41,795 nt of DNA from Macrostomum lignano (taxonomy: Eukaryota), in assembly GCA_002269645.1 (NCBI GenBank), contig NIVC01004567.1, forward strand, positions 1-41,795, written 5' to 3'. The position numbers and the translations under genes are program-made. Of the stretch, positions 8,273 through 35,032 are shown piece by piece (positions within the stretch are counted from its first letter, which is position 1; each line of letters starts with the position of its first letter). The notes beneath the pieces were generated by a model. It searched no databases and was not told where the DNA came from. It saw only the letters and a program-made list of their open reading frames with translations.

Positions 8273-8280
8273 ACAACAAG

Positions 8281-8357
8281 ATGCGTCTCACAGTGCTGTT
8301 TCTTCTTTCTGTTTGTCTTTTTCTTGCGCTAACCAGCGACGTTGGAGAGTCCTGGGG
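8281..8357 (+). CDS. First coding exon: signal peptide MRLTVLFLLSVCLFLALTSDVGES-WG
   Basis: ATG at 8281 (aagATG). Basic n-region, hydrophobic core, small-residue c-region. The GG|GTGAGT donor (phase 2) joins the TTTCAG|A acceptor at 8479 to give WG-CGWACKR in the frame of the 585-aa ORF. Confidence 0.88.
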
Positions 8358-11300
8358 GTGAGTTTGAGTCATATTTTTGTCTTCGAATCATTCCTGCCCT
8401 TATTTTTAACAGCAAGCTTTTTCAATTAGCGTTGAAGGTGCTGAACAATCCTAACGCCTTTTTTCCACTCGCTTTCAGATGCGGATGGGCGTGCAAACGC
8501 ATGCGTCGCATCCGAGCGAGAGCCGCCAGGCTGAGGCGGCTGGCGATTCAGAGGGCCAGGGCCCTCAGGCGCCGCATCTTGCTGGCTCGGCGGAGAGCAG
8601 CCAGAGCTGCGGCAAGAGCGCGGGCCAGAGCCAGAGCTTGGGCTCGAGCCAGGGCCAGAGCTGCGGCTAGAGCCAGGGCCAGAGCCAGAGCCATTGCTAG
8701 AGCCAGGGCTAGAGCTTTAGCCAAACGGTTGGCAAGAGCCCGCGCAAGAGCTCGCGCAATTGCCAGAGCCAGAGCTAGAGCTTTGGCCAGACGTGTGGCA
8801 AGAGCACGCGCAAGAGCTCGCGCAATCGCCAGAGCCAAGGCTAAAGCTTTGGCCAGACGTGTGGCAAGAGCACGCGCAAGAGCTAGAGCCAAGGCTAGGG
8901 CTTTGGCCAGAGCAGCGGCTAGAGCAGCGGCCAGAGCAAGGGCCAGAGCTAAAGCTCGTGCCCGGGCCATCGCCAGGCGGTTGGCAAAAGCACGAGCCAG
9001 AGCTAGAGCAATCGCTAGAGCCAGGGCCAGAGCTTTGGCCAGACGTTTGGCAAGAGCTCGCGCAAGAGCTCGTGCAATCGCCAGAGCCAGGGCTAGGGCT
9101 TTGGCCAAGGCAGCGGCGAGAGCAAGGGCCAGAGCCAGAGCTCGTGCCCGGGCCGTCGCCAGAGCCTTGGCACGTGCTAAAGCTAGAGCCCGGGCTAAGG
9201 CAAGAGCTGTGGCTAGAGCATTGGCTAGAGCAAGAGCCAGAACGAGAGCACTGGCCCGAGCAAAAGCCAGAGCCCTGGCCAGGGCAGTGGCCAGAGCCAA
9301 AGCTAGAGCAAGAGCCAGAGCTAAAGCATTGGCCAGAGCCAAAGCCCTAATTCGTGCCCGAGCCCGATCTTTGGCGGCGGCGGCGGCGAGAGTAAAAGCA
9401 AGAGCCACAGCCCGAGCGAGAGCCTGGGCCAGGAGACGAGCTCTAGCCCTGAAGCGAGCCAAAGCCACAGCGAGACGAAGAGCCAGAGCTCTGGCCAGGG
9501 CCGTCGCTAAAGCAAGTAGAAGAGCAAAAGCTTTAGCTAGAGCCAAGGCTAGAAGAGTGGCCAGAGCGGCGGCAAGAGCGGCGAAGAAGATTCGAGACTG
9601 GTTCCGAAGGCGGGCCAAGCGCGGAAGAATCATCAAGAGATCAATCTACCGTCGTGTGAAGCGGCTCAAAACCCGTTTTGTCAAGTTCGTCAAGCGTCTG
9701 TTCCGCAAATGCCCACGAGGATACAAGAAGCGTGGAAATCGTTGCTACCGCCTTTACTGCCCGAAGCCGTACGTCCGCCGAGGCGCCCGGTGCGTTCGCT
9801 ACTACCGAATCTACAAGCCCCGAAAATGGTGCCCCAAAGGTTTCCGTCGAAGAGGCAGCCGGTGCATCAAGCGCATGCGCATCATCTGCGCAGCTGGCTA
9901 TCGAGTTTACCGCGGCAGATGTCACCTGGTCCGGTGCCGTCGTGGATTCATCAAGATCGGTAGAAGCTGCCGCCGCAGCTGCAAGCCCGGATTCCGACTC
10001 CGTGGCCGTTTTTGCGTTCGCTATCGCTTCCGATGCCCCAAGAACTTTTATTACCATCGAAGGCGCTGCGTCCGATTCCGCCGAGGATCGACAAGGTAAT
10101 TTTTGAAACTGCGAGTAGCATAGCATTTGAAATTGTTGCAATGCAAACCTAAGATGCGCGTGCAATTTTTTACTGTAGATGCCCGAGAGGATACCGCAGG
10201 AGAGGCAGAAAGTGCTTGCGCACCGTTCGATCGTGCCCGCTTAACTACCGCCGCCGAGGCAGGCGGTGTGTCAAGCGCTGTGCAAGCGGCCGGGTGCCTC
10301 GGCGCATTCGCCGCGGAGTGATCAGGTGCGTTGTCGTCACGTCCAAGTGCCCACTCGGTTACAGTCTGCGACGCGTGCGACGCGGAAGGCGCTACAGGTA
10401 CTTTCCTTTAGTAGCAAATGTGAATACAAGATACTTTAAGAACAAAATAAATACTAAGTATTACATCTGCTTCAGGTTCCGCTGCGTCATCAATGCTGGA
10501 AGATGTGCACGTGGATTCAGACGAGTCAAGCGATACAGACGTGGCTTTTCTTGCGTTCGCATTGTCTGCCCGAGACACTACAGGAAACGCGGATCTCGAT
10601 GCGTCTACCGACCACCCAAGGGTGGCAGCCGAAGATGTCCGGCAGGTTACAAAAAGGTGCGAGGCGTCTGCAAGAAGCTGAACTGCCCGGCCGGCTACGT
10701 GCGCAGGGGATCGCGCTGTGTGCACACCAGGTGCCCCCGTTTCTACCGCCGAGTGGGCAGATTCTGTGCCCGGATACGCTTTGTTGGCAAATGCCCAAGA
10801 GGCTGGCGCAGGACTGGCCGTCTCTGCCGCAGACGTGTGTGCCCGAGCGGCTTCAAGAAAGTTGGTCGCTACTGCATGCGTAAGTCCTTAACATAAATTG
10901 CAGTTCTCACTAAAGATGCAGTCACTTGAGCACTGGGTAATGCAGATAACCCACAACGCTTTAGCGATTTGAATCAAATAGAAATAGAATTGCGGCTTGC
11001 GATTTGCGGATATTTTATCCGACCGAACCAATTTTTCAATAAATATTTACAGGAAAATCCTGTCCATCTGGATTTGTCCGACGTGGTCGGGCTTGCTACA
11101 GAGGTGAGTTGATCCAAGCTCCTAATTGATGAATGATTCTCAGTTTTTCGAGTAAAGCGCGCAGCGACAGTTATTAAATATTGTTTTAATATTAAAATTT
11201 TAGCCCGATGCGCTCGCGGCTTCAAAAAGATGGGAAGCGTGTGCATCAGTGAGTGACTGACGGTTTTGATTTAAGTTTTAGTTTTGAACCAGTGTACAGA

Positions 11301-14300
11301 ACGCATTATTGTAACGAATTTAATTATTCGCCCTCCAGGACGCTGTCCAAGCGGCACCAGAACGACGCGGTATTTCTGCATCCGCAAGCGTTGCCCGAAA
11401 TTCTTCAGGCGCGTTGGGCAGAGCTGCGTTAGAGGTTTGATGATCTTGATGCTGACTAGATATCTTAACAATGCTGGATTAGATCTGTGCAGACAATAGT
11501 TCAAGAAATTTTCACCTGTTCCTTATGATGACCTACTTCAGCTCGCTGTCCCTCCGGCTACGTGGCCCGCTCCTACCGCACTAGAGTGTATCTCAAGCAT
11601 CGTGTTACCGGATACACCAAGAAGTGCACCTGCATTAATGGCAAATCAAGTGCCAAGCCACGGGCAAACTCCATCGATGTGGCTTTTGTAGTTGACGTGA
11701 GCGGCAGCATGGGCCGAGTCATCAGCGCCATCAAGAAAAACATTGTCAACGTCATCAACGTCAACGCTAAGTCCAGAGTGGTACGTAAAATAAAATCAGC
11801 GGAAATTCCCCCTCATCCATCAGGACAATTTGAAAATGATTAATCTTAACCTTCCACTGTGTCTCCTCAATTCAGGTGGACAAATTCATTCTCGTGCCGT
11901 TCGCGGACCCAAAAGTGGGACCAGTGACAATCAGCAGAGGTCGGTCCCGCCTGCACAAGAGCAGGCTTATCAAAGCGGTCAGGCGCATGCGAGCCAGCGG
12001 TGGCGGCGACTGTCCGGAGATGAGCCAGTCCGGCATGTACGAGGCGCTCCGGCGCGTCAAGCGAAACTCCATCGTCTACGTGTTCACTGATGCCAGTCCG
12101 TCGAGACGAGACAAACGGTTGGAAATTTCACTACTTGATTAAACAGTTATCTTTAAAATATTTGCTACAAATAAACAATCATGCAATAAACCCTTCTAGT
12201 CTAGTGCAACAAGAAAATGAAGTAAAAATAAACCATTTGAAACTCCTATTACAGACGACAGGCCGACGTGCTCCGGCTGTCGAAGAGCAAAAACGTGCAG
12301 CTCAACTTCCTGCTCACCGGTCCAATGTGCGGCAAAAGGAATTCGTACAAAAACTTGTCAAAGAAATCGAAAGGTGCCTGGATCAAAATGAAAAGGTCGA
12401 CAACGTACCGCGTTTTGCGCTTCCTCAGCAAGGCCATCCCCAAGGGCGCCACCGCTCTGAGGATGCTGAACCGGCGCGGACTATCCTCATTCATCAAAGC
12501 AAGGAAAACATGCACTTGCCACCGCATTGCCAGAATGAAGGCCCGTTACAAGTACGTCAGCTCGGTGAAATGCTTTGTCAGGCCTCGGCCAAGCACTGGC
12601 CGCTGCTCCAGAATCCTGAACCAGCGAAGGCGACTAAGACGCGCGGCCCAGCTTTACCGGCGTCGCATGCGAATTGGCAGGCGGTCAGCGCGGCGAAGAA
12701 GCGCCAGGCGATTCCGGGCAGTCAGAAAGCAACTGCGAGCGATTGCAAGAAACCTGAGACGCTGCTACAGAAGCAAAACAAGAAGTAAGACGGGCAGCTT
12801 CAAAATTTTCAAAATATAAAATTATTTAAATGCTAAGGAAAATTCAGAATTAAAAAAACTATATTTTCGTCAAAGTACTCTCTTGCAAAAGGAACTAACA
12901 AAAAGTCACTAGGATTAAGTTCTAGAGTGGAGTGTATGAGACCAGTATATTATATAATGCTGTGTCAATCTACAGAATAGTTGAAGCAAAGAGACTGATG
13001 AAGAAAACATAAAACTCGTTTCTTTTTAATAACCTTCAGATTTGTGCAGAAAGGTCAGATGCGGACGGGGTAGACGCTGTTTCGTCCGAAACATGCGCCG
13101 CCGTTTCGGATCTGTCTACCGCTACGTCAGAACCGCATCCTGCAGGCCTGTCAGGAGTAAGAATTTTTTTGTAATCCTTCTGGTTCATTCAAGTATTTTA
13201 AGGAGACAAATTCAGTCTCTGAATAACATCACTTTGTGGCAAAAACTGTTTTATAGATCTGTGCAGAAGAGTCCGGTGCAAGTCGGGTTATCGGTGCCGA
13301 GTTTCATACCAGCGCAGAATAGTGACCCGCAGGGTGACTCGATTCGTCAGAAAGTGTCCATGCCGCAAGGTCCTGGTTAAGCCATCCGCCTCCAAAAAGA
13401 AGACAGGCCTGGTCGACATGGCGTTCGTTGTAGATACCACAGGAAGCATGGGCAGAGTCATCAAAGGAATCCGGTCAAGCATCAAGCAGATTGTGGCTGC
13501 AAACAGGCGTACAGTCAGTCGCTTCGTCATCTCTGCTTTCAATGATCCAAAGGTAAGGATTAAAACACAACAAGTGAAGTATGGACTCTCCAATCCCAAT
13601 AACAGAAAATACAATGACACTTGGGATCAACGTCGTTTTTTTTCAGGTTGGTCCAATTACTGTCAGCTCAAGAGCCAGAACAATTTTTGCCGCAGTGAAC
13701 AGACTTAAACCCAGAGGAGGTGGCGACTGTCCTGAAAGGAGCATGAGCGGTATTCTTGCTGCCGCTAAGCGAGTGAAGTCCGGATCGGTCATCTACGTGT
13801 TCACGGATGCAAGCGCAAAAGACAGAGGAAGGAGGCGTCAAGTAAGCTAATGGATAAGTTATTGTGTTCAGTTTCTGATTAGTAGTCCTTGGCAACTGCA
13901 CAAAAGGTTTCCTGTTTTTAAAAAAAATGCATACTTTCCACTACTTTCAGGTTCGAGAAATTGTGAAACGGAAGTCCCTCCAAGTGATGTTCATCATCAC
14001 AGGTCGATTGTGCGGCCGAAGCTACCGCAAGGAGTACCAATATGTGTCGAGAGGCAACGGCCGGGTTATAAAAACAACAAGTGGACGCATCAAGAAGGTG
14101 CTCAGCTTCATCCAAAAAGCGGTCAAGTTAGGAAGCCGCCGACTGAGGCGCTTGAACCTCTCTCACCTGTCGAAGTTCATCCGCAAGTGCCACTGTCGCC
14201 GCGTCAAACAGAGGGTCACAAGAAGATACACTAGAACCAGGCGAGTGGCCAAGTGCACAAAGAGACCAAAGGGAGCTTGCTCATCGCGAAGATGCAGTAA

Positions 14301-17300
14301 GGGCTACAAGTGTGTGCACTATCGAGTAAAAACACGTCGAGGCAGCGGACTTAAAACACGATGTGTCAGCATCAATAGTGAGTATTTCTTCTCCAATATA
14401 ACCCTGCCTCTTCACTAAACTTTAACCTTTGCTCAAAAACTCAACAAAACTTTCTCTAGACCCATGCAAGAAAATGCGTTGTCAGAAAGGACGCAAATGC
14501 ATTGTGCGCTTCTTCGGAAGAGTCTACAAAAAAGGAAAACGGCGTGTTAAGTTGGTGCGCAAAAAAGCCGTCTGCGTCAAGCGAATATCAAGTAAGATAT
14601 ATTTAATAGGCTGAAAAACTTTGACCTGTAAGAAAAATTGCAACACTTCAACATCATCAAAAACCTGTAGACCTGTGCAGAAGAGTTCGTTGTGGAAGAT
14701 ACAGGCGCTGCATTGTCCGAAGACTGAGAAGAGGATCACGACGCATGGTAGCACGATGTGTAGGTCCAAAGCCAAAAGGTAAGCTCTAAGCAGAAAAATT
14801 GGTATTTTATATTCATCTTGAGCCAGCTAAAAACTTTTGCCCCAGTGCGATACTCCACTCACTTGGTAGGCAACGCCACTCAAAATATCAAAGACGAAAA
14901 ACATTTTAAAAACTTACAGGTAAGTGCGGCCGACGAACCTGCCGAAGGAACCAGAGGTGCGTGACACGAAGATCTAGCAGGCGAATCCGAAGCCTCAGAA
15001 GAAGCATCAACAAACTGCGACGAGCTCACAGGAGCAGGACTGTCGCCGAGAGACGACGACATGCAGCCTCCATCCGAAAGAGCCGAACACCAGCTCGCTA
15101 CCGCCGTAAGCAATACTACTGAAACTGCTTTTTTGGCAACATGTAACAACGCTAGCGAATATAAATGCATTTCGTGTTCAGTATTTCGTTTTGGTTGTTT
15201 ATATCACGCTTTCACTTTGCATACTTCTCCGCTTCAGGAGTGCGAGTGAAGCACGCTTGCGAGGGCAAATCTCTGACCATCAGATGTCCATCCAGATACG
15301 TCATCCGGGTGCTGCGCGGATTCTATGGCAGAACATCTAACAAATACTGCGCTCGAGGACCCCGCAAGACATACAAGTGCAGCAGCGGCCGAGCCAACAA
15401 AGTCATCGCTTCCAAGTGCAACAACCGGCGAGCATGCAGGGTGCGAAGCAACAACGCCGTCTTCGGAGATCCTTGCCGCGGAACATACAAGTACATGACC
15501 GTGAGGTACAGATGCCAGCTGGCTTCATCGGTTGTGTCTAGCTACGCGAAGCGCAGAGCTCGACTTGCACGACTGCACAAGAGACGATTGAACGCTCTTC
15601 GATCGAGGCACAGGCGCAGAGTCGCTCGACTGATCCGACTGCTGAGACGAGCTAGACGAGGATCGAAGAGATGCGTCCGAAGGAGACGACCTTCCAGAGG
15701 TTAGTCGGCTATTCGGTCGACCGTTTATTTAAAGCAAAACAAATGCAGAAATTATTGATGCCCCACCTAGTAAATTGCTTCCTCAAATATCTAGTGAGAC
15801 TTTGAGCTACGGATTTTAGAGTTGAAGCACTTTCACCGAAGTTCATACGTTGCTCCTCACCGAATCACAACATACTTAGGCAAGAAATGCGGCCGACGAA
15901 CCTGCCGAAGGAACCAGAGGTGCGTGACACGAAGATCTAGCAGGCGAATCCGAAGCCTCAGAAGAAGCATCAACAAACTGCGACGAGCTCACAGGAGCAG
16001 GACTGTCGCCGAGAGACGACGACATGCAGCCTCCATCCGAAAGAGCCGAACACCAGCTCGCTACCGCCGTAAGCAATACTACTGAAACTGCTTTTTTGGC
16101 AACATGTAACAACGCTAGCGAATATAAATGCATTTCGTGTTCAGTATTTCGTTTTGGTTGTTTATATCACGCTTTCACTTTGCATACTTCTCCGCTTCAG
16201 GAGTGCGAGTGAAGCACGCTTGCGAGGGCAAATCTCTGACCATCAGATGTCCATCCAGATACGTCATCCGGGTGCTGCGCGGATTCTATGGCAGAACATC
16301 TAACAAATACTGCGCTCGAGGACCCCGCAAGACATACAAGTGCAGCAGCGGCCGAGCCAACAAAGTCATCGCTTCCAAGTGCAACAACCGGCGAGCATGC
16401 AGGGTGCGAAGCAACAACGCCGTCTTCGGAGATCCTTGCCGCGGAACATACAAGTACATGACCGTGAGGTACAGATGCCAGCTGGCTTCATCGGTTGTGT
16501 CTAGCTACGCGAAGCGCAGAGCTCGACTTGCACGACTGCACAAGAGACGATTGAACGCTCTTCGATCGAGGCACAGGCGCAGAGTCGCTCGACTGATCCG
16601 ACTGCTGAGACGAGCTAGACGAGGATCGAAGAGATGCGTCCGAAGGAGACGACCTTCCAGAGGTTAGTCGGCTATTCGGTCGACCGTTTATTTAAAGCAA
16701 AACAAATGCAGAAATTATTGATGCCCCACCTAGTAAATTGCTTCCTCAAATATCTAGTGAGACTTTGAGCTACGGATTTTAGAGTTGAAGCACTTTCACC
16801 GAAGTTCATACGTTGCTCCTCACCGAATCACAACATACTCAGGCAAGAAATGCGGCCGACGAACCTGCCGAAGGAACCAGAGGTGCGTGACACGAAGATC
16901 TAGCAGGCGAATCCGAAGCCTCAGAAGAAGCATCAACAAACTGCGACGAGCTCACAGGAGCAGGACTGTCGCCGAGAGACGACGACATGCAGCCTCCATC
17001 CGAAAGAGCCGAACACCAGCTCGCTACCGCCGTAAGCAATACTACTGAAACTGCTTTTTTGGCAACATGTAACAACGCTAGCGAATATAAATGCATTTCG
17101 TGTTCAGTATTTCGTTTTGGTTGTTTATATCACGCTTTCACTTTGCATACTTCTCCGCTTCAGGAGTGCGAGTGAAGCACGCTTGCGAGGGCAAATCTCT
17201 GACCATCAGATGTCCATCCAGATACGTCATCCGGGTGCTGCGCGGATTCTATGGCAGAACATCTAACAAATACTGCGCTCGAGGACCCCGCAAGACATAC

Positions 17301-20300: not shown

Positions 20301-23300
20301 TATAGAAGAATTTCCAGGGTTTATCGAAGAAGACTGAAACGAGCTGTGGTTTCGTACTACAAGAAAAAGAGCATCCTTGCAACCTCTCTACAAAGAAGGC
20401 TTCGAATGTTGCGCAAGCGACTTGGCAGACGCAAGGGACGGCGATTTATTCGTCGGGCCATGTGCGTTGCCAAAAATCCTTGCAGAAGAAAGCGCTGTAG
20501 ACGGGGATACAGGTGCAGAGTGCGCAGAGTCAAGTCAAAGAGGGGTCGAAAAATCACTGTTGGACGCTGCGTCAGAAAGTCTAGTAAGTAATCGTTATGT
20601 TAATTCAATAAATAGCAATATTTGCTATTCCTTCTGCCCATAAGCTCGTATTATTTCCGAATGAGGCAAACAGTGCATGATATTTTTTTAATTTCAGATC
20701 CATGCAGCAGAAAGAAGTGCGGAAAGAACCGTCGCTGTGTGGTGAGAAGGATCCCAACTCGAGCCTTCCGGCTGTACCGCTTCTATCTAAGAGTCAGTAG
20801 GAAACGTTTCCGTCTTCGAATGCATGGCATACGCAGGAGGCTTGGCCGTAGGCGTCGACGTCTGGCGGCCCGCGCTATCCGTCGAAACCGACGCTTGAGA
20901 CGATCAGCCGCTCGGCGATTCCGAGGCCGACGACGGGCAAGACGCTTCCGAAGTTTGAGACGGTCACTGAAGCGCACTCTTCGAAGGCATCGCCGTCGTT
21001 CGACCCGGTCGTACCGACGAATTCGCAATAAGCTAAGACGGCGTCTGAGACGCGCCACAAGGCGACAATACAGACGACTCATGCGAAACAAACGGCGCTA
21101 CATTACCCGCGCCGTTTGTGCACCAAAGAGAGCAAGTGAGTCACATAATTTCATTTTTTCTCACATGCGGTTTCTTGCACTTAGAGACGCGAGAGAGATA
21201 TATTATTTTCCGATCAAATTCATTCAGATCCATGCAGTAAGAAGCGCTGCCCAAGTGGATCCAGGTGCGTCGTGCGCAGAAGAGTTCCAAGGCTGTACAG
21301 GCGCTTCAGAAAAATCGTAAAGCGTCGCTATAGAAGATACGCTATTGCAAGGCGCCGGCTCTCCAAACTTAGTCGCAGAAGACGAGCGGCAACTGCTAGA
21401 AAGTTGAAGCGTTCCCTGAAAAGAAAATTGAGAAAGATCTGGAAAACCTTTAAAAGACGCGGAGCCTTTAAACGAAGTGGGCGTTTGGTAGCTCGCTGTT
21501 ATAAGCCAGGAAGTAAGTTGACAAAGGCCCGAGATATTCGCTTGCGGCTTGCGCATCGCTAACTTATGCTGTCTCTGAATTTTAGAGTTTTGCCCGAGCG
21601 GATACCGTCGCCGGGGACGAACTTGCGTCGGCTACTATCGGGTGTGCCCGCGAACTTTCACTATGATTAGGAACAAGCGCGGAGGGCGGTGCATCAGTAA
21701 GCCAATTTTATTGTATAACGACTAGGAAAGCTTTCTCAAAGACTTTCCAGCGATTATCATAGATTATTAACTATTGCTCTCAAAAAAAATATTGCAGAGT
21801 TCAACAAGATTTGCAAGTCCGGCAAATTTTTGTTCAATAACCGCTGTTGGCGAAAATGCCCTCGTGGCACCAGACGCTCATCAAGACGGTCCTGCAAGCG
21901 TAAGTTAAAAAGGGGCGTTGTCTAGTTTTTTTGTGATTCTTTACTTATTGGTAAAGCAGAATATCAATACTCAACCTGGCATTGCGTAATACGGTTTTAG
22001 TTGTCAAGTCATGTCCTGCATTCATGCTCAGTAGACGATGCGTCAAGAGATGTCCAAGAAGATTCGTCGCGGTGGGTCGTCGATGCAGGCGTAAGTTTAG
22101 AAGTCTGAAAACAATCCTATGCTTTACTGCCTTTTGAACCGATTTCACAACTAGCCAAAATGTTTTTTACAGGATGCCCACGAAACTCTTTCCGACGAGG
22201 AAACAACTGCTACCGTGAGTAAATTCATTGTTAAAAACCAAATCTTGACTACTGACTCGTACAACAGAAATTTTTTGCTTACCGCGTTGCTTTCGGTTGG
22301 TGTATTACAGGCCGCAGAATTTACTGCCGCTCTGGATTTTCTTACCGAGGAAGATGCAGAAGTAGATGCCCGGCCCGCACTTATGCAAGAGGACGAAGAT
22401 GCATCCGTAAGTATTGCGCAAGAGAGCAAGCAGTCCAATGTCTGTGCAAAAACAAAAAAATCATTCAACCATCCAGTACAATAGTGGATTAATGCAATCA
22501 GCTACGACAAATTTTAGGAGCTCGCTGTCCACGCGGATCAAAGGCCAGACTCAGCATCCGAAGGGGCAAAATCGTTTGCATAAGTATGAACTATTTGATT
22601 TTTATATGCGGTTTAGAAGCGGGCTGCTTTTTAAATACGAACTCATTCTCATCTTCTGCATTTCCCTTTGCAGGAAAGCGCGGTTGCAAGCGTGGCCTGG
22701 TTTACTACTCTGGCTCTTGCCGATCGAAGTGCCCCAGTGGAACCGTCGACGACGCTGGTACTGCCTGAAGATCTGCAAGAAGGGCTTCATGAGAGTGGGA
22801 TTCCGCAGACAGAGATGCATCCGGGCATACTGCTACAACAAGTTCCGCATTGGCCGGTCCTGTGTGAGAAAGTGCCCAGTCGGCTACATTGGAATTCGAC
22901 GAAAGTGCCGAAGAGTTTCCATCTCGTGTCCCAAGGCCTACGTTAGGCTTGGCCGCGCGCTCTGCCTCAGAAATTGTCCAGCCGGTTTCACCAAGAGGGG
23001 CAAACAATGCGCGTACTCCGCCTGCCGCAAGGGAACATACAGGTACCGAGGCACCTGCATGAAGGGCTGTCCAGCTGGAACAAAGCGACGAGGATCGTAC
23101 TGTTTCAGTAAGTTATTTGCCTGTTCAATGTAGCATGATTTAACCCTTTCAACGTCATAAAAGTTATTCCACACATCTAAAATTTTAGAGAGAAGCAAAT
23201 GCCGCTTTGGTCGCTTCGCCTACGGAAAGCGATGCCTGGTGAGGTGCCCGCCTGGTCACTATCGAAGCTTTGCTAGACGATCGTGTGTCAGTGAGTATTT

Positions 23301-26300
23301 CTCTTTGATTCGGCTATGCTTCTCTTAGCTGTAACCGCTAATTCGATATACGCTATTCAATTGCTAAATCAAAACATTTCAAATCTCTTATATACATCGA
23401 TTATGTTCCAGGAATCAAGCACTGCAAAAAAGGTCTGCTTAGATTCAGAAGACTCTGTCTCAAAACGTGCCCTCTTGGCTTCCGAAGAAAGAGACGAAGC
23501 TGCGTACGAAAATACGTCTGCCGAAACGGAAAGATGTACAGAGGAGTCTGCATCGTTACCAAATGTCCTTCTGGAACTCACAACATTCGAGGATCGTGCG
23601 TTCGCACGCGTAAGTCTGATTAAAGGGTTGAATGAGGGATTAATTAATTGCAAAGCGCAATGACCAACTTACAAACATCTTTTTTTTCATTCCATCTTAG
23701 CTCGCCTCTGCCCGTCTGGTAGGCTGCTGCTAATCAAGCCGAGTGGTGCTAGATCTTGCGTTCGAGCCTGCCCAAGGACCTACACAGTTGTTAGGTCGCG
23801 GGGCTCTTGCAAGCCTACACGCTGTCCAAAGGGCATGTACCGTCTGGGAATAACATGCAGAAAGTCCTGTCCCAAAGGATTCCGTGCTCGAAGAGGTCGC
23901 TGTAGAGCTGTCAGAAAGAGCTGCAAAGACGGCCTGTTCCGACTCCGCAGGCGTTGTGTGAAGCGATGCCCAAGAGGCTTCAAGGCCAGAGGAGGTCGCT
24001 GTAGACGAGTGCCTTTCAGATGCAAGAAAGGAACTTTCAGGTTCAGAAGGCGTTGCGTCAAGAAATGCCCGAAAAAATACACCGGTCGCGTCTACAAGCG
24101 GGCGAGAAGAGCGCCAGTCCGATACTGCAGGCCTATTAGAAGCTGCAAGAAGGGACAAGTGCTCGTTTACAGACGGTCACGGAGTCGCTACAGGTCAAGA
24201 TGTGTCAGTGCAAGCAAGCCTTGCAAAACTGGTTACGTGCTGAGAAGACGTGTCGTACGATTTAATAGAGGCGGAAGGAGGGTGCGCAGAGTGCTAAGAC
24301 TGTGCAAGAGAGCCAGGGAAAGCTGTGCCAAGGGATTGTTCTTGTTCCACGCCAAGTGCAGAAAGCAGTGCCCAAGAGGAATGAGGACATTGTTGGTTAG
24401 ACGATCAAGAAAAGTTGTCCGCACATGCAAGCCAAGTAAGGCCGTGATTTCATCTGATTGAATAGAGAGAATTCTATATTTCTAGAAAATAGTGTCTAAA
24501 AAGCTAATTTGCATACAAACTTTCAGAATGCGGTAGAAAGTTTGCTTTCCGAAGCAAATGCGTCAGAAGGTGCCCACGTGGATACACAGCAAGAAGATTC
24601 AGGTTTATCAAGTTCTGCAGGAAAGGTGCGAGTTAAATTTAATAAAGTGCCTGATTTAACAGTATGCTAATGGAATATCTCCAGTTTCACTTACAAGCAT
24701 CGATTTAAACATTTCAGATTGCCCCAGAGGAAGATTCGCGTTCAGAAATTCGTGCATCTCGCGGTGTCCAGCAGGCTACAGAAAGCGAAGATATCGAGTG
24801 TATTCCAGACGATCAAGAAAGCTTGTTTCCATCACCAGCTGCGCCCGGAAAACTAGTAAGTTGGCTAGCCCTGATGCTTAACCGAGACAACCTTTAATAA
24901 CTGTCAATAAATATTTCATTATTTTCTCTATTGTAGAATGCCCATCAGGATACCGAATAGTGTATCGTCTCAAGCGAAGTGCTAAGGGCAGGTCAATCCG
25001 ACCAACTAAGGTCTGCAGACCAGGTATTTTTTTAGCTTTTTGTCCTTCGGATAAGCAAGTAAAGGCGTAGCAAGCATAATAAAAATTAACTATAACAACC
25101 TATATTTCTTCAGTGAGACAGAAGAGCTGCAGATATCCAACTGCACTTGCCTTTGGTCGCTGCTTCCGCCGTTGCCCATCCGGTTACTACAGACGGTCCA
25201 GAACTGTTCGCGGGCGAAGACTTGGATTCTGCCTGCCAACAAAGCTGACAGTCCTTTGTCGCCGCCGTCGCTGCGGCAAGACAAAGATGTGCATCATCAG
25301 CCGAAGAACGAGAGTTTTCAGGGCCGGAAAGCGAGCAGTTCGTCGAACTGTACGAAAGCCCGTCTGTGTTCCACGATGTAAGAAAGAACATATTCTGTGC
25401 TTAAGATGCATGACTGTTATTTAAGTTTTTTAAATCGACTTCTGAATTTCCCATTTCCCTGCAGACTGCAAAGCCGGAACCTATCGTCACAGGCGCAGAT
25501 GCGTTCGAAAGTGTCCACGCGGCTACATTAAACGCTCTTCGAAGCGTTTCAGAATGCACAAGGGCCGCAGAATGGCATACAAAGTGAGACTCTGCACGAG
25601 GAAACTGTGCAGGTATCCCATGGCCAGATATAGCACACGATGCGTTAAGCGTTGCCCAAGCAGATATGAAAAGAAAGTATATCGCCTCAGATTCCGCTAC
25701 AGGCGATCGAAGTTCATCAGACGCTATGCTGTATGCCGACGCAATCTCTGCTCAAAGGTCTCCTGTTCAAGAAACCAGAGGTGCATTGTAAAGACTCTTC
25801 CAGGGCGCAAAGATCGGCAAGTGGCTGTTTGTGCTAATAAAAACCCGTGTGCCCGGATGAGGTGCCGACGAGGATTTAAATGCCGAATTAGACGAGTATC
25901 TGGGCGCAAACGAGCATCATGTGTTCCTTCTATGCCTTTCTGCAAGGCTGGATTAGTTGGCTTTGGCAAACGATGTCAGCGGCGTTGCCCTAAAAATTAT
26001 AGGGTTTTGAGCAAGAAGATCGGAGGACGACTGTACAGAATGTGCGCCAGAGACGCATGCTCACGAGGCCGATTTTTCTCAAGTGGACGATGCGTGCCGC
26101 GCTGTCCGAGTGGCTTTGCTGGAAAATCTATCAGGTATTCTAGGTCATACATCTTCAAGTACTGCGCTCCGAAAGCTTGTAAGCGCAGACTGTTTAGACT
26201 TGGCGGACGCTGCGTGAAGCGCTGTCCTTCAGGATACAGGAGACGATACTTCAGGGCTAGACGAGGTGTTCGAAGATACTGTGCCTCATCTGCCTGCAGG

Positions 26301-29300
26301 AAAGGAACATATAAGCTTGGAAAGCGTTGCGTCAAGAACTGCCCAAAGAATTACAACAAGAAAACAGTAAGAAAGGGGTCGAAATCTTATGCAGCTTGTG
26401 TGCCCAAGAAATGCCCCGCCAAGTCTATGTTTATTAAGGGTCGCTGCAGAAAAGCATTGAAGGGCTGCTACGATAGGACATTCGCTTGCAAGGGTTGGGC
26501 TAGAAAGAAACGGTGCTCAAAAAAGCTGGTTAAGTACTTGTGTCCAGCGTCCTGTGGCACCTGCAATCCTAAGAAGAGAAAGCTCTGCACCTGCATATCC
26601 ATGGGCGATCCACACTACCGTACATTTGATGGAAAATGGATCCACTTCATGGGAAAATGCAAGTATCTGTTGGCCAAGTCCAAACTACGAAAATCTTCTA
26701 GGTGCAACTTCTCTGTTGCAGCAAAGAATGAAGTTCGTGGAAAGAGACGAAGAGTCAGCTGGACAAAATTCGTTGACATTAACATTCATGGATTGTCTAT
26801 CCGCTTGCACCAGAAACGTCGTGTCTTCTTCAACGGCAAGAGAGTTCGAAGGCTACCTGTTTCGCTCTACAAGAGAGGCAAGAAGCTTCGAGTTTACCGT
26901 AGTGGAAATAATGTTGTTGTTGAATCAAAGTACTGCGGCTTGTATCTTGAGTTCAATGGCAGATCAGTGGCCGAACTGCACCTTCCAAAATCCCGGTTCG
27001 CTGGAAAGGTTCAGGGCATCTGTGGAAATTGCAACGGAAATCCTAAGGATGATTTGAAAACCAGAAGTGGAAAGGATGTCTCCAAGCTTGGTTCAAAGGG
27101 ATTCGTGCAGATCGGACAATCCTATCTTGTCGCTGACCGTTCCACAAAGAGCTCGCGATGCAAAGTCAAACCTGCATCAACATCAAAATGCTCAAAATCA
27201 ATGAAGCGAAAGATCAAATCTAGCAGATTCTGTGGCCTTATTTCAAACAAGAAGGGGCCATTCAGAGCTTGCTTGAAATCCGGAAAAGTTGATTATACCA
27301 AGATCTATAAGAGCTGCAAGTTTGACGTTTGTCAGTACCGAAAAGCTAAAAATCGCCGAAAGGCTGTGTGCGAGTCCCTGGAAACTCTTTACAACGCTTG
27401 CCTGGCCAAGGGATTCCGAGTGAGCTGGAGAAAACGCCGGTTCTGTCCATTGAAGTGCGGTGCCAATTCTGTATTCAGAAGAAAAACAAGTGGCTGCCCA
27501 AGAACATGCGCCGATCTAGGTCGACGAAGAAAGTGCCGTCTGCCATCCCGAGAAGGCTGCGCCTGCAAAGAAGGCTACGTACTCAATGGAAAGAAGTGCG
27601 TCCCCGAAAGAATCTGCGGCAAAACAGTGCCACTTGATCTGGCCTTCGTTGTCGACGGAACAGATGACGTCAGTTCAGATGAGTTTGAAACACTGAAGAA
27701 CTTGATCATCAAGCTTCTTACAAAGTACAGACTGTCTTCTAACTCTGTACGACCAGCAATTGCAGTGTTCGGCAGAACAAGCCCAACTGTAAGTCTGTTT
27801 AACCAGCGCCCCGGAAAAGCTGACTTCATGGCATTCGTCAGAAAAATGAAGAAACCAGGAGGATCAGCTGATAACTTGGATGCCGCTCTCCGGGTTGCCA
27901 ACAAGGTGATGATGAACCCAATGGGAGGCGCAAGACCAGCGGTTCCAAAGTATATTCTGTTATTGAAGAAGAGCAAAGTTCCAGCGTCATCGGAAAGTGT
28001 TGTCAAGAGCGAACTAGATTCGCTGAAAAAAGCTAACGTCCACGTGGTTGCTGTCACTCTCCCACCAACAAAACCAGGAAAGACCGACACGGCTATTGGT
28101 GGATTGTCAGTTATCCCAGCACGAGTGCCACCGTATCTTGCAATCCCGAAGATCACCAAGGAGCTGGAAAAGACAGCTGGCTGTACTTCTGGATATAAAC
28201 GACAAGGCAAACGCTGTATAGATGTGAACGAGTGCGCAGCAAAGGTACCACCATGCCATTCTGACAGCACCTGCGTCAATTTGCCAGGCAGCTTCATCTG
28301 CCTCTGCCGCGAAGGCTTCCGACATGACAGATCCCGTGGATGTGTGTCTCTGAAGAAGGAGAAGTGCCCAAGCAAACCGAAATGCGACAATGGCTACCGC
28401 TTTGATAAGGCAAAGGGCAAGTGTGTTGACATCAACGAATGCAAAGAGAATCCGTGCTTGGGTGATAGTGCTACTTGCGTCAATACACCAGGCAGCTTCA
28501 AGTGCAAGTGCAAGACTGGTTTCGAGTACAACAAATACTTTGGTTGCGTTGACATCGACGAATGCAAGGGAAAAGATCCTTGCGCTGGTTCCGGAAAGTG
28601 CATCAATACACTTGGCTCGTTCAAGTGTACCTGCGACGAGGGTTACACTTACAAAACCGGTCTCGGCTGCAAGGATATCGATGAGTGCGCAGCTGGATCG
28701 CATAACTGCAAGGGCGGTTCGAAGTGCATCAACACGGCTGGTTCTTACAACTGCAGCTGTGACTCCGGCTATCGCTACGAAAGCAACAAGTGCATTGACA
28801 TTGACGAGTGCGCTGAGGACAGCAAACTCTGCGACGCATCTGCCACATGTGTAAACAAGAAGCCAGGCTATGAATGCCAGTGCAAACTTGGCAGCAACTG
28901 GGTGCACAAGGCTGGAAGAGGGTGCGTGCCAGATGAGAAGAAGGGAATGTCTCAACGAAAGGTTGATTTTATCTTCACCATTGATGGTAGCGACAAGCTG
29001 AAGTCATCTGAGAAGGACATCAAGGATTTCTTGACCCGCCTGCTCAATAAGTTTAAAGCCAATGAGTTGAAGGGTCTGAGCGTGCGTGCATCGGCCATTA
29101 TTATGGGCAAAAGGGAGGTGCGGATATCAAATTTAGCCAAGCTGACCTGTCTGGAATCGATGACAAGATCAAGGCGCTTAACTTCCCTGGAGGAAAGGCA
29201 AACCTTCTCGACGGAATGAAGAAGGCAAATCGGGAGCATGCAAAGGCCAGAAACGGAAGCACGCCGATCGTGTTCCTCATCACTGGTTCGAACATTAAGC

Positions 29301-31224
29301 CGGGCGACACCAACCTGCCAGCGATTAAGAGACTGTCTGACAATTTCAAGTCGACCGGAAAGTTTTTCACTGTCCAGCTGACACCGGCACGAGAGCCGTC
29401 CGACTGGAGCCCGCTGTATTCCCGCGATGAAATCAGCCACTACGTAACCGTAATCAGATCCGCTGACATTAACACCATCTACAAGCTAATCTACAAGAGA
29501 ATCTATCCGCTGATCAACTGTCCAGAGGGCTTTGTCAAGGTTCGCGGACTCTGCCAGCTGCAGACAGCAACAATCAAGTACTGCAAGACCGAAGACAAAC
29601 AGTTGCGAGCAGTTGGAAGCACATGGCAAGAGGAGTGTTCCGAGTTCAAGTGCACCAACAGTGGAATCGAAGTCGTGTCCAGAAAGTGTCTTGGTTACGA
29701 CGGCCAATGCTACTCAACGGAGGAGTACTTCCCATGCACTCAGGTCACTGGATCTCTGAGCTGGAAGTGTCGTTGCAAGTAAGAACCTTACATTCAGTCT
29801 TACAAATTATCTTTGCATCAACTATGGATAAAAACGGTGCTTAGTTCTTGATGAACAAACTCAAAGTGACATTTTAAATAAGATTTCGGTACCATGCCAT
29901 CTCCACATTTCAGACTGCGCACCCGCACAAACAAGAAGGGAAAGAAGGTCGAGTCCCTGCATTATCAGTCTATCGCCACCTCGAAGGAGAAGGTGCTCAC
30001 AGAGAGTGGCCGCCAGTGCGTGTTCCCCTTCAAGTATCAGAACAAGTGGCTGTACAACTGCGACGAGTACAACGGCAGGTATTGGTGCTCGTACCACCGA
30101 ATGCACGAGACCGGATCATGGGGCTACTGCAAGATCAAGGAGAGCAAGAACCGCTGTACCGATCCGTTCAACCCGAGCAAGGTCTACATCGAGGGCGAGC
30201 GCTGGAATCACGGCTGCAATGTGATGGAGTGCACCAAGACCGGATTGAAGAGAATCCCTAGTGAGTTTTTTGTTTTAAGCCCGTGACGATGTCTTCAGTC
30301 AGCAGCTGCATTAATAGATACTTGTGTAGGTTTTTATTAAATTGTATGGATCTAAGAACGAGTAGATCAAAGATGGGGTCCTCACAGCAATCATAATAAA
30401 AGTTCTGCTGCAACAATTTGCAGAGTGCCAGGCCGCTGACAAGACTTGCAAAGCCCTGAACGAGGACGGCTATTCTTGCCACTATAGCGGCAGCCTGCAC
30501 AAGAACTGCATCTGCGTCCAAAACTCGGCCGGCTGGGGCAAGAACGAAGTGGTGACCGGCGACAAGGCCAAGGAAGTGAGCAGCTCCGGAGGCAGCGTCG
30601 TTAGCGTCTGCGTGGATCGCAGCACCGGAAAGCGATACGAGCAGGGACAGGAGTGGGTCAACTCGTGCTTCAAGTACAAGTGCACCGCCAAGGGAGGCGA
30701 GCTGGTTGAGTCCGGGTGTAAACAGAAGGACGGCAAATGCCGCAAAATCGGCGAGAAGGGCTTCGACTGCGTTGTCAAGGGCAAATCGGCGAAAAGCTGC
30801 GAATGCGCTAAGGACAGCGCAGGCAATCCGACCCTAAGTGGCGTTGTATCAGGTAAGTTTCGTATCGGCTTATGGTGGCTTCAAGATTTCTCTCGAAATT
30901 CTATGCGGCTAATGCAGAGTACTCAAAGTGAAGGTCGATTGACACGAGCATCTGAAGAGACTAGAGTTCGGATCAAGGACCACTAGAAGTTATAAATTCG
31001 CTTGGTCCTTGGTTCGTAAGGTCCTTGGTTTGGATATTATCTAGGAATGTAGATGGAAAGCGAGTAGATAGAAAAATGATGCGAAGAGAATGAGGGAAAC
31101 TCACTGAATTCAAACATTTCGCCCAACTGCAGGACGCAAGATGATCCAGGTGCTGAAGGTTTCGAAAGTGAGCACCTCGCTGAAGACCGTGGCTAAGACT
31201 GTGGCTTCCAAGACCAAGAAGTAA
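8281..31224 (+). CDS. Giant secreted Arg/Lys/Cys-rich multidomain protein (~5,880 aa, 46 coding exons); adhesive/mucin-like extracellular protein
   Basis: Exons traced by hand, all GT..AG with consistent phase: 8281-8357, 8479-10095, 10179-10397, 10476-10879, 11053-11103, 11204-11248, 11339-11434, 11542-11780, 11876-12117, 12255-12784, 13040-13156, 13257-13552, 13647-13841, 13951-14377, 14460-14591, 14671-14778, 14920-15105, 15238-15699, 15880-16068, 16201-16662, 16843-17031, 17164-17625, 17806-17994, 18127-18588, 18706-19578, 19672-20583, 20698-21135, 21228-21512, 21586-21696, 21798-21899, 22001-22090, 22173-22214, 22311-22406, 22518-22583, 22674-23107, 23189-23290, 23412-23609, 23701-24435, 24527-24625, 24718-24855, 24937-25023, 25114-25377, 25465-29778, 29914-30260, 30424-30852, 31133-31224 (TAA). 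The sum is 17,650 nt; adding 2 nt for the frameshifts at ~22742 and ~29110 gives 5,884 codons including the stop. The last exon and the donor at 12118 (GTTGGA) are the least certain. Confidence 0.88.
8510..9590 (+). repeat. Coding Ala-Arg low-complexity block (~360 aa) with a 22-aa (66-bp) higher-order repeat
   Basis: Translation shows units such as LAKRLARARARARAIARARARA, LARRVARARARARAIARAKAKA and LARRLARARARARAIARARARA, built from AGAGCC/AGAGCT-type hexamers. Confidence 0.9.
11673..12440 (+). CDS. Hemicentin/VWA7-type vWA domain 1 (exons 8-10 of the giant gene)
   Basis: Motifs IDVAFVVDVSGSMG (MIDAS DxSxS), FILVPFADPKVGPV, GGGDCPEMS, IVYVFTDAS and NFLLTG match the hemicentin N-terminal vWA signature. 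Confidence 0.9.
13412..14120 (+). CDS. Hemicentin/VWA7-type vWA domain 2 (exons 12-14)
   Basis: Motifs VDMAFVVDTTGSMG, FVISAFNDPK|VGPIT, GGGDCPERS, VIYVFTDASAKD and MFIITG. Confidence 0.9.
14926..18600 (+). repeat. Intragenic 963-bp tandem duplication (~3.8 units); each unit has two exons, one encoding a SUEL/rhamnose-binding lectin domain
   Basis: Identical ORFs at 15165, 16128, 17091 and 18054 (963-bp period). Each encodes ACEGKSLTIRCP..FYGR..C..C..KCNNRRAC....FGDPCRGTYKYMTVRYRC, the SUEL consensus. Introns are duplicated with the exons. Confidence 0.95.
26464..26564 (+). CDS. ShKT (ShK toxin-like) domain within exon 43
   Basis: CYDRTFACKGWARKKRCSKKLVKYLCPASCGTC fits the six-Cys pattern C-x-D-x4-C-x2-W-x5-C-x8-C-x3-C-x2-C. 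Confidence 0.8.
26585..27620 (+). CDS. VWD-C8-TIL assembly (mucin/VWF D-domain type)
   Basis: CTCISMGDPHYRTFDG...GKCKYLLA; GKVQGICGNCNGNPKDDL; FCGLISNKKGPFRAC...SCKFDVC...CESLETLYNAC; CGANSVF...GCPRTCAD...EGCACKEGYVLNGKKCVP. Confidence 0.93.
27625..29520 (+). CDS. vWA - five calcium-binding EGF domains - vWA segment (frameshifted at ~29110)
   Basis: PLDLAFVVDGTDD starts the first vWA. Five D(I/V)(N/D)EC...C(V/I)N..G.(F/Y).C.C cbEGF units follow. VDFIFTIDGSDK starts the second vWA, which continues as GGADIKFSQ...PIVFLITGS in the shifted frame. Confidence 0.9.
29995..30135 (+). CDS. Fibronectin type II domain
   Basis: TESGRQCVFPFKYQNKWLYNCDEYNGRYWCSYHRMHETGSWGYC matches the FN2 pattern C-x-FPF-x-Y...C...WC...WG-x-C. 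Confidence 0.9.
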
Positions 31225-32699
31225 CTCAAATCTGCCCCTGATGAACGCAAAACTTAACTTTGAGACAACTTCGCAAACTTCAGTTTTAACCTGAAAATTT
31301 TTTGGTGGTGGGAAGAACATTTGCTTAATTGGCTGCAGCTTCACTGAAGCCTGAGACAGGCGTGGAGGAAAATACATTATTTCAATTCCGTTAAATTTAC
31401 AAAATGATTCTCGTTCATTAGCTTCTTTATTTTTTAGTTCAGCGTTGGTGGCAGCCGAAGATGAGCCGAATCATAATGCACTCGGCGCCCCTTAGCGACT
31501 AAAAACCGTGCTGTAAGCGTAGAAATATTGGATGCCTGAAATTCAACAAGTCTGGAGTCATTGGGAAGCGAAGAGGATAACCAGCAGCACTTTTGTGCAT
31601 GAACTTACAATTAAATTTGTCAGAGATACACGCAAGCTCAGTTATTGGTGGACCAAGAATCAATAAAACTCTAATGCTTTACAGAGTGAATGCGGCATAT
31701 TGCTGCCCTTCCTTAGAGGGCACACCTATGATTAGAGTTTGTACAGAAACCACAGAATGTACACAGAATGCAAGGACGCTTTAATCACTCAAGACGGGAA
31801 CTCGCAAAACCATGGTGAAAAAATCACGAGGCTCGTTTAAGAGCAGGGTTATGGCCAAGCTATTATGGCAGCAAACTCACCATGCCTCTTTTTGATCTTT
31901 TGGTAATTAATAACTGTCGTCTTCTCATGACTCCTACTGTATAGTAGGTTCGTGCGCAACGTTTCATTTGCTTCCCACGCACTTAGCTAAGAATGTAGCC
32001 TTCTCTTCAGCTTAAAGTTAAGCCCAAAAGGCTTTATATTTGACTATGGCTTGACCATAGATATGATACATGTACGGGTCTGTGAATTTAGTAACCGAAA
32101 TTTAGTAACGCAATGGTGCAGCTGAGGGATATTCCATATGTATTACTATAATATAATGTTACATTGTACACCTATTATATTTATATGGGTGATTTCAATA
32201 TTACTACGAGCGTATATGCATAGATTTAAGAATTTTTGCCGATCGGGATTATCCCGTATCCCCCAGCTACGCCAATGGTAATGCTTGAATTTAGTAACGA
32301 ATATACGAGAACTCGTAGTAACTCTTGAAATTTAGGAACCCCTCTAACTCTGGGTACCTATATCCGGTGTGAAGGAAATTTCTATTGTCCTGCAACTTCA
32401 CTCTTACATATTGAACTCTTCAAGTGTTACTACTCGTAAATTCAAGCGTTACTAGCTCGTAAATTCAAGGACACCCTACATGTACAATGAATCGAGCATC
32501 ATACTTTCTTACAGTGATTTGCGAGTTTTCCGTCCTGAGTTATTAAGAAGTCCTTGACTGGCACTGGAACTGGAACGTTCTTCATCAAATTTAACCATAC
32601 GAACCAGACAGGACAAATGCTACAAATAAAATCATCAATTTTTGGTCCATCAATATCTCTCTCTGCTTGCACCCCTTGCCAAATTTCATTTCAAGGTCA

Positions 32700-35027: not shown

Positions 35028-35032
35028 GCGGA

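Follow-up and report, generated by a model that had tools for sequence, protein, structure and literature searches.

Does the 23-kb region between positions 8281 and 31224 of contig NIVC01004567.1 from the flatworm Macrostomum lignano (41,795 nucleotides, all of which were analyzed and are referred to below as the window) encode one giant secreted protein, and if so, what would such a protein do outside the cell? An initial annotation of this DNA had read it as 46 phase-consistent exons specifying a polycationic secreted protein of ~5,880 residues, and had proposed that this protein was an adhesive, a cement or a mucus scaffold. Here, we report that the region is a single, expressed and translated gene, because the fragment models present in NCBI fit our reconstruction, two transcript open reading frames (ORFs) that cover it share peptides, and all 25 peptides listed for them in a mass spectrometry (MS) data set map onto it. 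As to its role, on balance we lean towards a secreted, multimerizing polycationic lectin scaffold that belongs to an external secretion (mucus or adhesive) and is deposited on surfaces.

The gene model was built with a splice-aware dynamic program trained on the exons of a GenBank protein (P0001, see below) mapped exactly onto the window. It was then curated by hand, the interventions being exon 1, exon 2 and its (Ala-Arg)n block, the unspliced 78-nt intron 10398–10475, a donor site extended to take in the peptide-supported sequence VFTDASAK, and uniform splicing for four SUEL units. This independent reconstruction comprises 46 exons on the + strand, from the ATG at 8281 to the stop codon at 31222–31224. 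The 45 introns, all of the GT–AG type, measure 73–280 nt, and 37 of them are in phase 1. After two 1-bp repairs, the coding sequence is 17,652 nt long; it specifies a signal peptide-bearing product of 5,883 aa and 687 kDa, with an isoelectric point (pI) of ~11.8, in keeping with the size and the secreted nature first put forward. The features of the gene are as follows.

8281–31224, + strand: whole coding span, 46 exons (gene model, NCBI partial models, 25/25 MS peptides).
8281–8357, + strand: exon 1, with the start codon and the signal peptide (MRLTVLFLLSVCLFLALTS, followed by DV), residues 1–19 (direct reading).
8480–9601, + strand: (Ala-Arg)n region of ~374 aa, residues 27–400; 45% Ala, 33% Arg; 18-, 22- and 40-residue periodicities; 66-bp DNA repeat.
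9707–11630, + strand: cationic Cys-rich repeats I (CPxGYxRRGxxC type), exons 2–8, residues 436–866 (repeat pattern).
11670–12339, + strand: hemicentin-type VWA (VWA_4) domain a (Pfam; peptides NIVNVINVNAK, FILVPFADPK, VGPVTISR and NSIVYVFTDASPSR).
13403–14037, + strand: hemicentin-type VWA (VWA_4) domain b (Pfam; peptides FVISAFNDPK and SGSVIYVFTDASAK).
14925–18707, + strand: four tandem SUEL units, exons and introns (Pfam, PDB, fold search; peptides SNNAVFGDPCR and CQLASSVVSSYAK).
18708–21508, + strand: Lys/Arg-rich region, with Lys/Arg-rich loops of 76–250 aa in CxxxxCxxxxxC...C mini-modules (motif scan; peptide AAVCVVNQCSK).
21509–26459, + strand: cationic furin-like Cys-rich repeats II, end of exon 28 to exon 43, residues 3301–4488 (Pfam Furin-like, 1.4e-11; peptide YPTALAFGR).
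22744–22745, + strand: presumed 1-bp deletion in a C-run, which breaks the frame in exon 35 (by inference).
26463–26573, + strand: ShK-type domain (Pfam ShK, 7.8e-5, 23.6 bits vs a cutoff of 20.9; peptide YLCPASCGTCNPK).
26586–27614, + strand: VWD–C8–TIL assembly (Pfam; C8, 9e-15).
27630–29494, + strand: VWA, five calcium-binding EGF (EGF_CA) and VWA (Pfam; six MS peptides).
29113–29114, + strand: 1-bp deletion in a G-run, which breaks the frame in the last VWA (window GGG vs NIVC01001495.1 GGGG).
29516–31224, + strand: C-terminal part, with three 8-Cys modules, FN2 (30011–30133), a Lys-rich tail and the stop codon (Pfam fn2; peptide DSAGNPTLSGVVSGR).

Immediately upstream of the start codon lies a likely intron of the 5' untranslated region (8184–8272, GTAAGT ... 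TTTGCAG); the first exon of the transcript would therefore sit further upstream.

While the 46 exons and their assignment to one gene stand, their phase consistency does not hold throughout, since the raw window is out of frame at two points, 22744 and 29113. The break at 29113 is an assembly indel, which is proved by the GGGG found at this site in another contig, NIVC01001495.1, and by MS peptides translated on both sides of it. Over 14 kb (window positions 22782–36769), the window and that contig show 0 substitutions and differ at 10 indel positions (9 gap openings), a pattern that is the signature of long-read polishing errors. The repair at 22744, a site that no second assembly spans, is presumptive: we assumed a deletion because adding one C gives CPSGTRRRRWYC, which matches the local repeat perfectly. 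A 38-nt intron (22700–22737) that bypasses the break was also considered and discarded, as it would measure half as much as the shortest of the other introns and would remove a perfect repeat motif.

In GenBank, the gene is represented only by fragments at the ends of contigs, under the label of hypothetical proteins, and has no full-length annotation. The longest open segment (25446–29216) is 100% identical to BOX15_Mlig000911g1 from M. lignano (hypothetical protein, P0001, 2,079 aa), which is fully contained in our model and reproduces exons 38–46 and the 3' half of the furin-like block. P0001 is truncated, because its contig, NIVC01001495.1, stops 1.2 kb upstream of the annotated start; the spurious ATG of the GenBank model (window position 23969) and the 29113 frame break are both due to indels in exons. 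On the other side, the 5' part of the gene is cut by the end of NIVC01003734.1, which bears two fragment models. The 537-aa model agrees with ours in its ATG and its 121-nt intron 1 and then enters exon 2, with 473 residues identical except R228K; the 624-aa model (P0031) shares 483 identical residues with ours, over exons 2–10.

The same contig provides a second copy of the 5' part (NIVC01003734.1 7199–13497 vs window 7260–13564) that shows 98.8% identity to the window, with true substitutions; it represents either an allele or a recent duplicate, which fits the 'g1...g8' numbering of the Mlig000911 genes. Twenty-one substitutions are exonic, of which 17–18 are synonymous in the frame of our model; only three, all conservative, change the protein (R to K, K to R, Y to H). 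Within the (Ala-Arg)n block, 10 of the 12 substitutions lie at codon position 3 and one (R to K) alters the protein. Because the substitutions are almost all synonymous, we conclude that the block is coding and under purifying selection. Comparison with the second copy also served to check the first 900 residues of the model, since they contain no usable tryptic peptides. Two other long ORFs overlie the (Ala-Arg)n exon, at 8548–9636 on the minus strand (Leu/Ala-rich, 362 aa) and at 8760–9350 in another + frame (Pro/Glu-rich, 196 aa). Both arise from the GCN-AGR codon repeat as by-products; the substitutions fit the Ala-Arg frame alone.

Translation of the gene is documented by the proteomic analysis of footprints in Wunderer et al. 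2019 (PMC6410801), of which we used entries from Dataset S2, sheets footprints_Trypsin_intact_1 and _2; all statements below on footprint content refer to those entries. Two transcript ORFs correspond to the window gene: an N-terminal one of 3,863 aa, 457 kDa and pI 12.1, annotated as galactose-binding lectin / hemicentin-like, and a C-terminal one of 3,590 aa, 419 kDa and pI 11.5 (RNA815_38 / RNA1310_79.1), annotated as cbEGF (calcium-binding EGF) / IgGFc-binding-like. The two ORFs overlap and have four MS peptides in common. All 25 peptides listed for them match our model exactly; they fall in exons 8, 9, 12, 13, 18–24, 25 and 42–46, and one of them, DSAGNPTLSGVVSGR, straddles the exon 45/46 junction. 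The protein is present in both footprint sheets, which agrees with the proposal that it is part of a secreted material, and it ranks high in sheet 1, where the following values are given.

MUC5B-like mucin: score 66.1, 16 peptides.
Window protein (C-terminal ORF): score 63.9, 18 peptides.
Mlig-AP2: score 49.6, 12 peptides.
Mlig-AP1: score 31.9, 9 peptides.

Myosin, which tops the tail and pull-down sheets, is not among the footprint entries listed; the footprint sample is enriched for, and not limited to, secretions. In the literature, no paper mentions RNA815_38, RNA1310_79, Mlig000911 or Mlig001212 (a paralogue described below), so that the protein is undescribed. The 'mucus protein' of Pjeta et al. 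was considered and set aside, as it has another transcript identifier, RNA1509_276.

The domain architecture was in large part correctly anticipated, as Pfam recovers two hemicentin-type VWA, four SUEL, furin-like, ShK, VWD–C8–TIL, two VWA, five cbEGF and FN2 modules. Cationic Cys-rich repeats of the CPxGYxRRGxxC type number about 75 and are distributed over residues 436–866 and 3301–4488; the first set (repeats I) has no Pfam match and is 58–60% identical to paralogue P0029. The two VWA_4 domains (residues 880–1405; Pfam E-value 1e-73) display DxSxS / DxTxS metal-site motifs, with DxSxS in domain a. In the SUEL array, each unit consists of a 4-Cys clasp, a Lys/Arg-rich helix, a SUEL/rhamnose-binding lectin (RBL) domain, a second Lys/Arg-rich helix and a closing Cys. 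The SUEL domains (Pfam, 7e-20; match to PDB entry 5h4s, 6e-58, in an alignment that includes the CEG, YGR and FGDPCxGTYKY motifs) have the eight Cys, the YGR and DPCxGTYKY motifs and the fold that define RBLs, and the closest structures are those of the sea-urchin lectin SUL-I (5h4s) and salmon CSL3. The few acidic residues left in these domains are located in the conserved CEG and GDPC motifs. From these motifs, the four domains are predicted to be rhamnose/galactose-binding lectins that have kept their sugar-binding motifs. At the DNA level, a tandem repeat at 15165–19016 consists of four 963-bp units of two exons and two introns each, which are identical at 962/963 positions, introns included; either the array was amplified or homogenized by gene conversion very recently, or its copy number in the assembly is uncertain.

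Two labels of the initial annotation stand as descriptions of sequence patterns. The CxxxxCxxxxxC motifs that it called FOLN-like do exist: 18 such mini-modules are scattered over residues 1176–4297, each with a loop followed by a closing Cys, the loop containing 12–24 residues in nine of them, 76–250 Lys/Arg-rich residues in five, and a whole SUEL domain with its Lys/Arg-rich flanks in four. However, Pfam yields no FOLN match at E ≤ 10. Similarly, the 8-Cys modules called VWC-like are there, but at the same threshold they have no VWC match and reach just Fn1_2, below the cutoff (E 0.0012). The order of the modules in residues 4490–5883 is ShK, VWD–C8–TIL, VWA, five cbEGF, VWA, 8-Cys, FN2, two 8-Cys and the Lys-rich tail. 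Pfam finds no Lectin_C and no cystine-knot (CTCK) match, and no discoidin domain was found in the protein.

The polycationic character claimed for the first ~4,500 residues, with its near absence of Asp and Glu, was borne out. Residues 1–4520 contain 26.5% Arg, 9.5% Lys (36% for both), 9.5% Ala, 6.3% Cys and 1.0% Asp+Glu, for a net charge of +1,586, and the whole protein contains 21.8% Arg, 10.3% Lys and 2.8% Asp+Glu, for a net charge of ~+1,700. The cationic mass is restricted to residues 27–4520, the last 1,363 aa having a net charge of +136 with 9% Asp+Glu. Exon 2 (8479–10095) has indeed a single acidic residue, D399, in 539 codons. The positive charge extends into the folded domains and is not confined to linkers; these domains are supercharged, as indicated by the following values.

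SUEL domain: net charge +20, 81 aa.
VWD domain: net charge +29, 160 aa.
C8 domain: net charge +16, 71 aa.
Each VWA_4 domain: net charge ~+20, ~136 aa.

With just five N-glycosylation sequons and no Pro/Thr/Ser domain (Ser+Thr ~11%), the protein is not a mucin and, judging from its sequence, it is more probably a glycan binder than a glycan carrier.

The cationic segments were modeled with AlphaFold2, from a single sequence for exon 25 and from a paralogous unit for the SUEL unit. The exon 25 model, in which 168 of the 290 residues have a pLDDT (predicted local distance difference test) value ≥ 90, contains helices 10–75/79–148 and 157–216/220–270, so that each 127-residue loop is a helix-turn-helix. 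The model of the paralogous SUEL unit (pLDDT 76) consists of a 51-residue helix (14–64), the SUEL domain (69–161) and a 48-residue helix (163–210); a fold search (Foldseek) with this model returned PDB 5h4s and latrophilin lectin domains with a probability of 1.00. The Lys/Arg-rich stretches are thus predicted to be long antiparallel helical hairpins whose base is clasped by the 4-Cys mini-modules, and not disordered low-complexity regions; the pairing of the helices is suggested by the turns in the middle of the loops. A fold search of the PDB with the helical-hairpin model gave generic long-helix matches alone (best E 0.45).

The window protein is not alone in M. lignano. A collinear paralogue, BOX15_Mlig001212g3, continues in two adjacent gene models and in UniProt fragments, and is 53–60% identical to the window protein in the best blocks and ~41% identical over 1,600 residues. 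It has a similar signal peptide (its sequence starts with MRLALLLLSALLF) and a similar composition (~21% Arg, 8–11% Lys, 2.5% Asp+Glu), lacks the long (Ala-Arg)n block, and contains one SUEL unit vs four in the window. The cationic character is therefore conserved as a family trait between the two proteins. In the first protein search, no VWD-bearing paralogue appeared. At the paralogue locus (NIVC01000061.1 10001–31590), three adjacent GenBank models of 1,596, 1,542 and 1,671 aa are found, the last of which runs off the locus. Moreover, footprint sheet 1 contains a second polycationic SUEL-lectin protein (4,920 nt, 1,639 aa, 199.7 kDa, pI 12.48), whose peptides VLSGDLISYR, GQVGDSCISYCR and FNDPTGSPLPK are encoded neither by the window nor by the other loci and paralogues analyzed. 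Outside Macrostomum, relatives were found for individual domains alone. The best matches of VWA_4 are hemicentins and VWA7, and the more than 110 homologues retrieved are all of ordinary composition; the VWD–C8–TIL assembly displays 31–36% identity to zonadhesin, IgGFc-binding protein and tectorin, which also have ordinary compositions. When 338 aa of the cationic Cys-rich region served as the query of an exhaustive HMMER search among 1.84 billion representatives, five weak matches were obtained, none of which is polycationic. Flatworm transcriptomes are probably under-represented in the collections searched, so that the description of the family as Macrostomum-specific is provisional.

How does the protein compare with known secreted polycations and adhesive proteins? 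The closest case is Mlig-ap1 (GenBank MH586844; transcripts RNA815_13121, 317 and 27695), from the same species, which is thought to act by an electrostatic cohesion that polyanions can block (PMC6410801). Both are giant (5,407 aa for Mlig-ap1 vs 5,883 aa), secreted, Cys-rich and mostly Lys/Arg-rich proteins with an extreme pI and a VWD–C8–TIL plus cbEGF core, and both are found in footprints. However, in Mlig-ap1 a C-type lectin, VWD–C8–TIL and 17 cbEGF are flanked on either side by terminal GRK-type low-complexity regions, whereas the cationic mass of the window protein is wholly N-terminal, has an Arg:Lys ratio of ~3:1, is made of Cys-knotted repeats, predicted helical hairpins and the (Ala-Arg)n block, and has no C-terminal Lys/Arg-rich counterpart. 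In addition, the lectins of the window protein are SUEL and not C-type lectins, it has VWA_4, VWA, ShK and FN2 modules and only 5 cbEGF, and the position of ShK before VWD and of VWA and five EGF_CA after it differs from the Mlig-ap1 order. The initial description of the protein as ap1-like yet architecturally distinct was therefore apt.

The ap3-type proteins (Mile-ap3a/b from Minona ileanae, PMC6745481; Tmed-ap3 from Theama mediterranea, PMC9229212) are also large secreted polycations of flatworm adhesive secretions; their knock-down leads to the loss of the dense vesicle core, and it has been proposed that they are masked by an anionic releasing factor (PMC6745481, PMC9229212). Unlike the window protein, in which Cys makes up 6%, folded modules are numerous and Gly-rich low complexity is very limited, they are nearly pure low-complexity proteins devoid of folded domains, Tmed-ap3 consisting of 88% G, R, K, H and S (PMC9229212). 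The combination of VWD and galactose-binding lectin domains cited for sea-star footprints corresponds to Sfp1 of Asterias rubens, a giant cohesive footprint protein with a galactose-binding (SUEL-type) lectin, VWD, C8, cbEGF and ~5% Cys (as described in PMC6410801); it comes from another phylum, no polycationic mass has been described in it, and the likeness rests on shared domains. Gel-forming mucins, VWF, zonadhesin, IgGFc-binding protein and tectorin share the VWD–C8–TIL unit, and these families multimerize via disulfides; compared to a gel-forming mucin or VWF, the window protein has one VWD assembly, no Pro/Thr/Ser domain, no cystine knot and a charge opposite to that of typical mucins. 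Finally, only the VWA_4 domains are shared with hemicentin and VWA7, and the window protein has no Ig arrays, G2F or fibulin module, in contrast to hemicentin.

If the window protein is a scaffold of an external secretion, it could work as follows. A gland cell would make it and pack it into granules with a polyanionic partner, and the VWD–C8–TIL, VWA and cbEGF end would mediate its multimerization, as in VWF and mucin-type proteins. After release, it would form a cohesive scaffold whose guanidinium and ammonium groups would bind polyanions (sulfated or carboxylated glycans, biofilm, mineral surfaces, glycocalyx), while its lectin heads would bind Gal/Rha-terminated glycans, candidates for which are the PNA-positive Gal-beta1,3-GalNAc of Mlig-ap2 or mucins. 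Heparin and fondaparinux block the attachment of M. lignano and strip ap1 from footprints, and Lys, Arg and Mg2+ block release (PMC6410801). Charge-based cohesion thus has a precedent in the same animal, since heparin blocks and Lys/Arg prolong Mlig-ap1 adhesion; the cohesive Sfp1, with its lectin, VWD, C8 and cbEGF domains, is a further precedent for the mechanism. Several points weigh against this scenario. Polyanion binding, lectin specificity and multimerization are all inferred; no data on the expression site or the knock-down of the gene turned up in the literature, which also yielded nothing of use on rhabdite chemistry or from a Macrostomum cell atlas; and the 93 RX[KR]R motifs of the protein might allow proprotein convertases to cut it into smaller products. 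The footprint samples also hold tubulins and yolk-/lipoprotein-like proteins, so that presence in footprints does not prove a function in adhesion. Furthermore, the gene is absent from the 10 transcripts reported in adhesive organs (PMC6410801), and the glue claim of the initial annotation is not supported. Double RNA interference (RNAi) against Mlig-ap1 and Mlig-ap2 empties the adhesive vesicles (PMC6410801), which argues against a major role inside the adhesive granules. For the last two reasons, the source is more likely to be a mucus gland or another body gland than the adhesive gland. A more specific proposal, which we regard as tentative, is that the protein is a third structural component of footprints, an Arg-based, fully structured and supercharged scaffold of a new design, with Cys-clasped hairpins, lectin heads carried on helical stalks and positively charged VWD, VWA and SUEL domains, that would cross-link the galactosylated ap2 or mucins to anionic surfaces. 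It would be a member of a Macrostomum-specific family, as suggested by the paralogue and at least one further SUEL protein, of pI 12.5, which are also present in footprints.

The main rival explanation is mucosal defense, in which the polycation and its RBL heads would bind bacteria in the mucus of the body surface and agglutinate or kill them. RBLs act in innate immunity, and fish-egg and skin RBLs, protamine-like antimicrobial polycations and eosinophil major basic protein would be analogues. The SUEL domains, with intact sugar-binding motifs and SUL-I and CSL3 as nearest relatives, the extreme cationicity, the ShK domain and the presence of a MUC5B-like mucin alongside it in the deposit all fit such a role, as do the RX[KR]R motifs, where convertase cleavage might free cationic peptides. 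Yet the 6% Cys in regular repeats and the VWD–C8–TIL, cbEGF, VWA and FN2 modules suggest a structural multimerizing matrix rather than a peptide precursor, and we consider defense unlikely as the primary role, although it is compatible with a scaffold and the two are not exclusive. It is more doubtful still that the protein is a third component of the duo-gland adhesive system, made by the adhesive (or anchor/releasing) cells and linking Mlig-ap2 glycans to ap1 and the surface. Its footprint MS score above those of ap1 and ap2, predicted Gal-binding heads that could bind the PNA-positive glycan of ap2, and a domain vocabulary common to ap1 and Sfp1 would be in line with this idea. The adhesive-organ transcript list and the vesicles emptied by the double knock-down speak against it, however, and the protein was not seen among the PNA pull-down entries listed, nor was the gene found in the portions consulted of the supplements to the positional RNA-seq study.

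Those same supplement portions, which give testis-, ovary- and tail-specific candidates, do not contain transcript RNA815_38, a point that also goes against a reproductive secretion (egg cement, shell-gland, seminal or antrum) contaminating the footprint dishes. M. lignano has cement glands, and yolk-/lipoprotein-like proteins head the footprint lists, so that reproductive or gut products do reach the sample; this origin nevertheless seems improbable, and both it and an internal matrix are less likely than the scaffold of an external secretion. Finally, the similar size and Lys/Arg-rich character, together with the two frame-breaking single-base indels, could suggest that the gene is Mlig-ap1 itself, an assembly chimera or a pseudogene, which we judge very improbable. 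None of the six ap1 peptides, the antibody epitope SRKPRRKNRKSRKP or the 12 probe primers is found in any frame or strand of the window; the domain order is different and the two proteins are separate MS entries. Regarding a chimera or a pseudogene, the 29113 indel is an assembly difference in 14 kb devoid of substitutions, peptides come from either side of it, and the substitutions relative to the second copy are almost all synonymous.

The rest of the window is rich in repeats. Upstream of the gene, positions 1992–6070 contain four minisatellites, whose units measure 8/20, 20, 18 and 20 bp and occur in up to 32 copies, with long repeat-driven ORFs on both strands. ORF 5020–5472, which has no Pfam match, resembles what we take to be the tail of a retrotransposon reverse transcriptase. 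Downstream repeats are found at 34203–35027 (23-bp unit, 36 copies), 35447–35661 (22-bp unit, 10 copies) and 37378–37577 ((GACT)50). The latter sits within a minus-strand ORF (37258–38157, 299 aa) that overlaps a GenBank gene model and has sub-threshold TRADD-like_N and DUF1997 matches alone. The G+C content falls sharply to 34% at 38001–40000, vs 45–59% elsewhere. The ORFs neighboring the giant gene have no informative Pfam matches.

This locus illustrates how a 23-kb gene can be scattered over contig ends and several 'hypothetical protein' models. Giant polycationic secreted proteins are a known class in flatworm footprints; what is unusual here is the fully structured, Arg-based design. For biomaterials, it represents an alternative design of salt-tolerant polycation, with Arg preferred over Lys, folded disulfide-stabilized modules over low-complexity sequences, and a 374-residue (Ala-Arg)n block. 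The current model of Macrostomum adhesion involves ap1, ap2 and an unknown anionic releaser. Since a third giant polycation outscores ap1 and ap2 in the footprint proteome entries considered here, the deposited material is more complex than this two-protein model. The window protein is also a concrete candidate for glycan-mediated cross-linking, as its predicted Gal/Rha lectin heads could bind the Gal-beta1,3-GalNAc carried by ap2.

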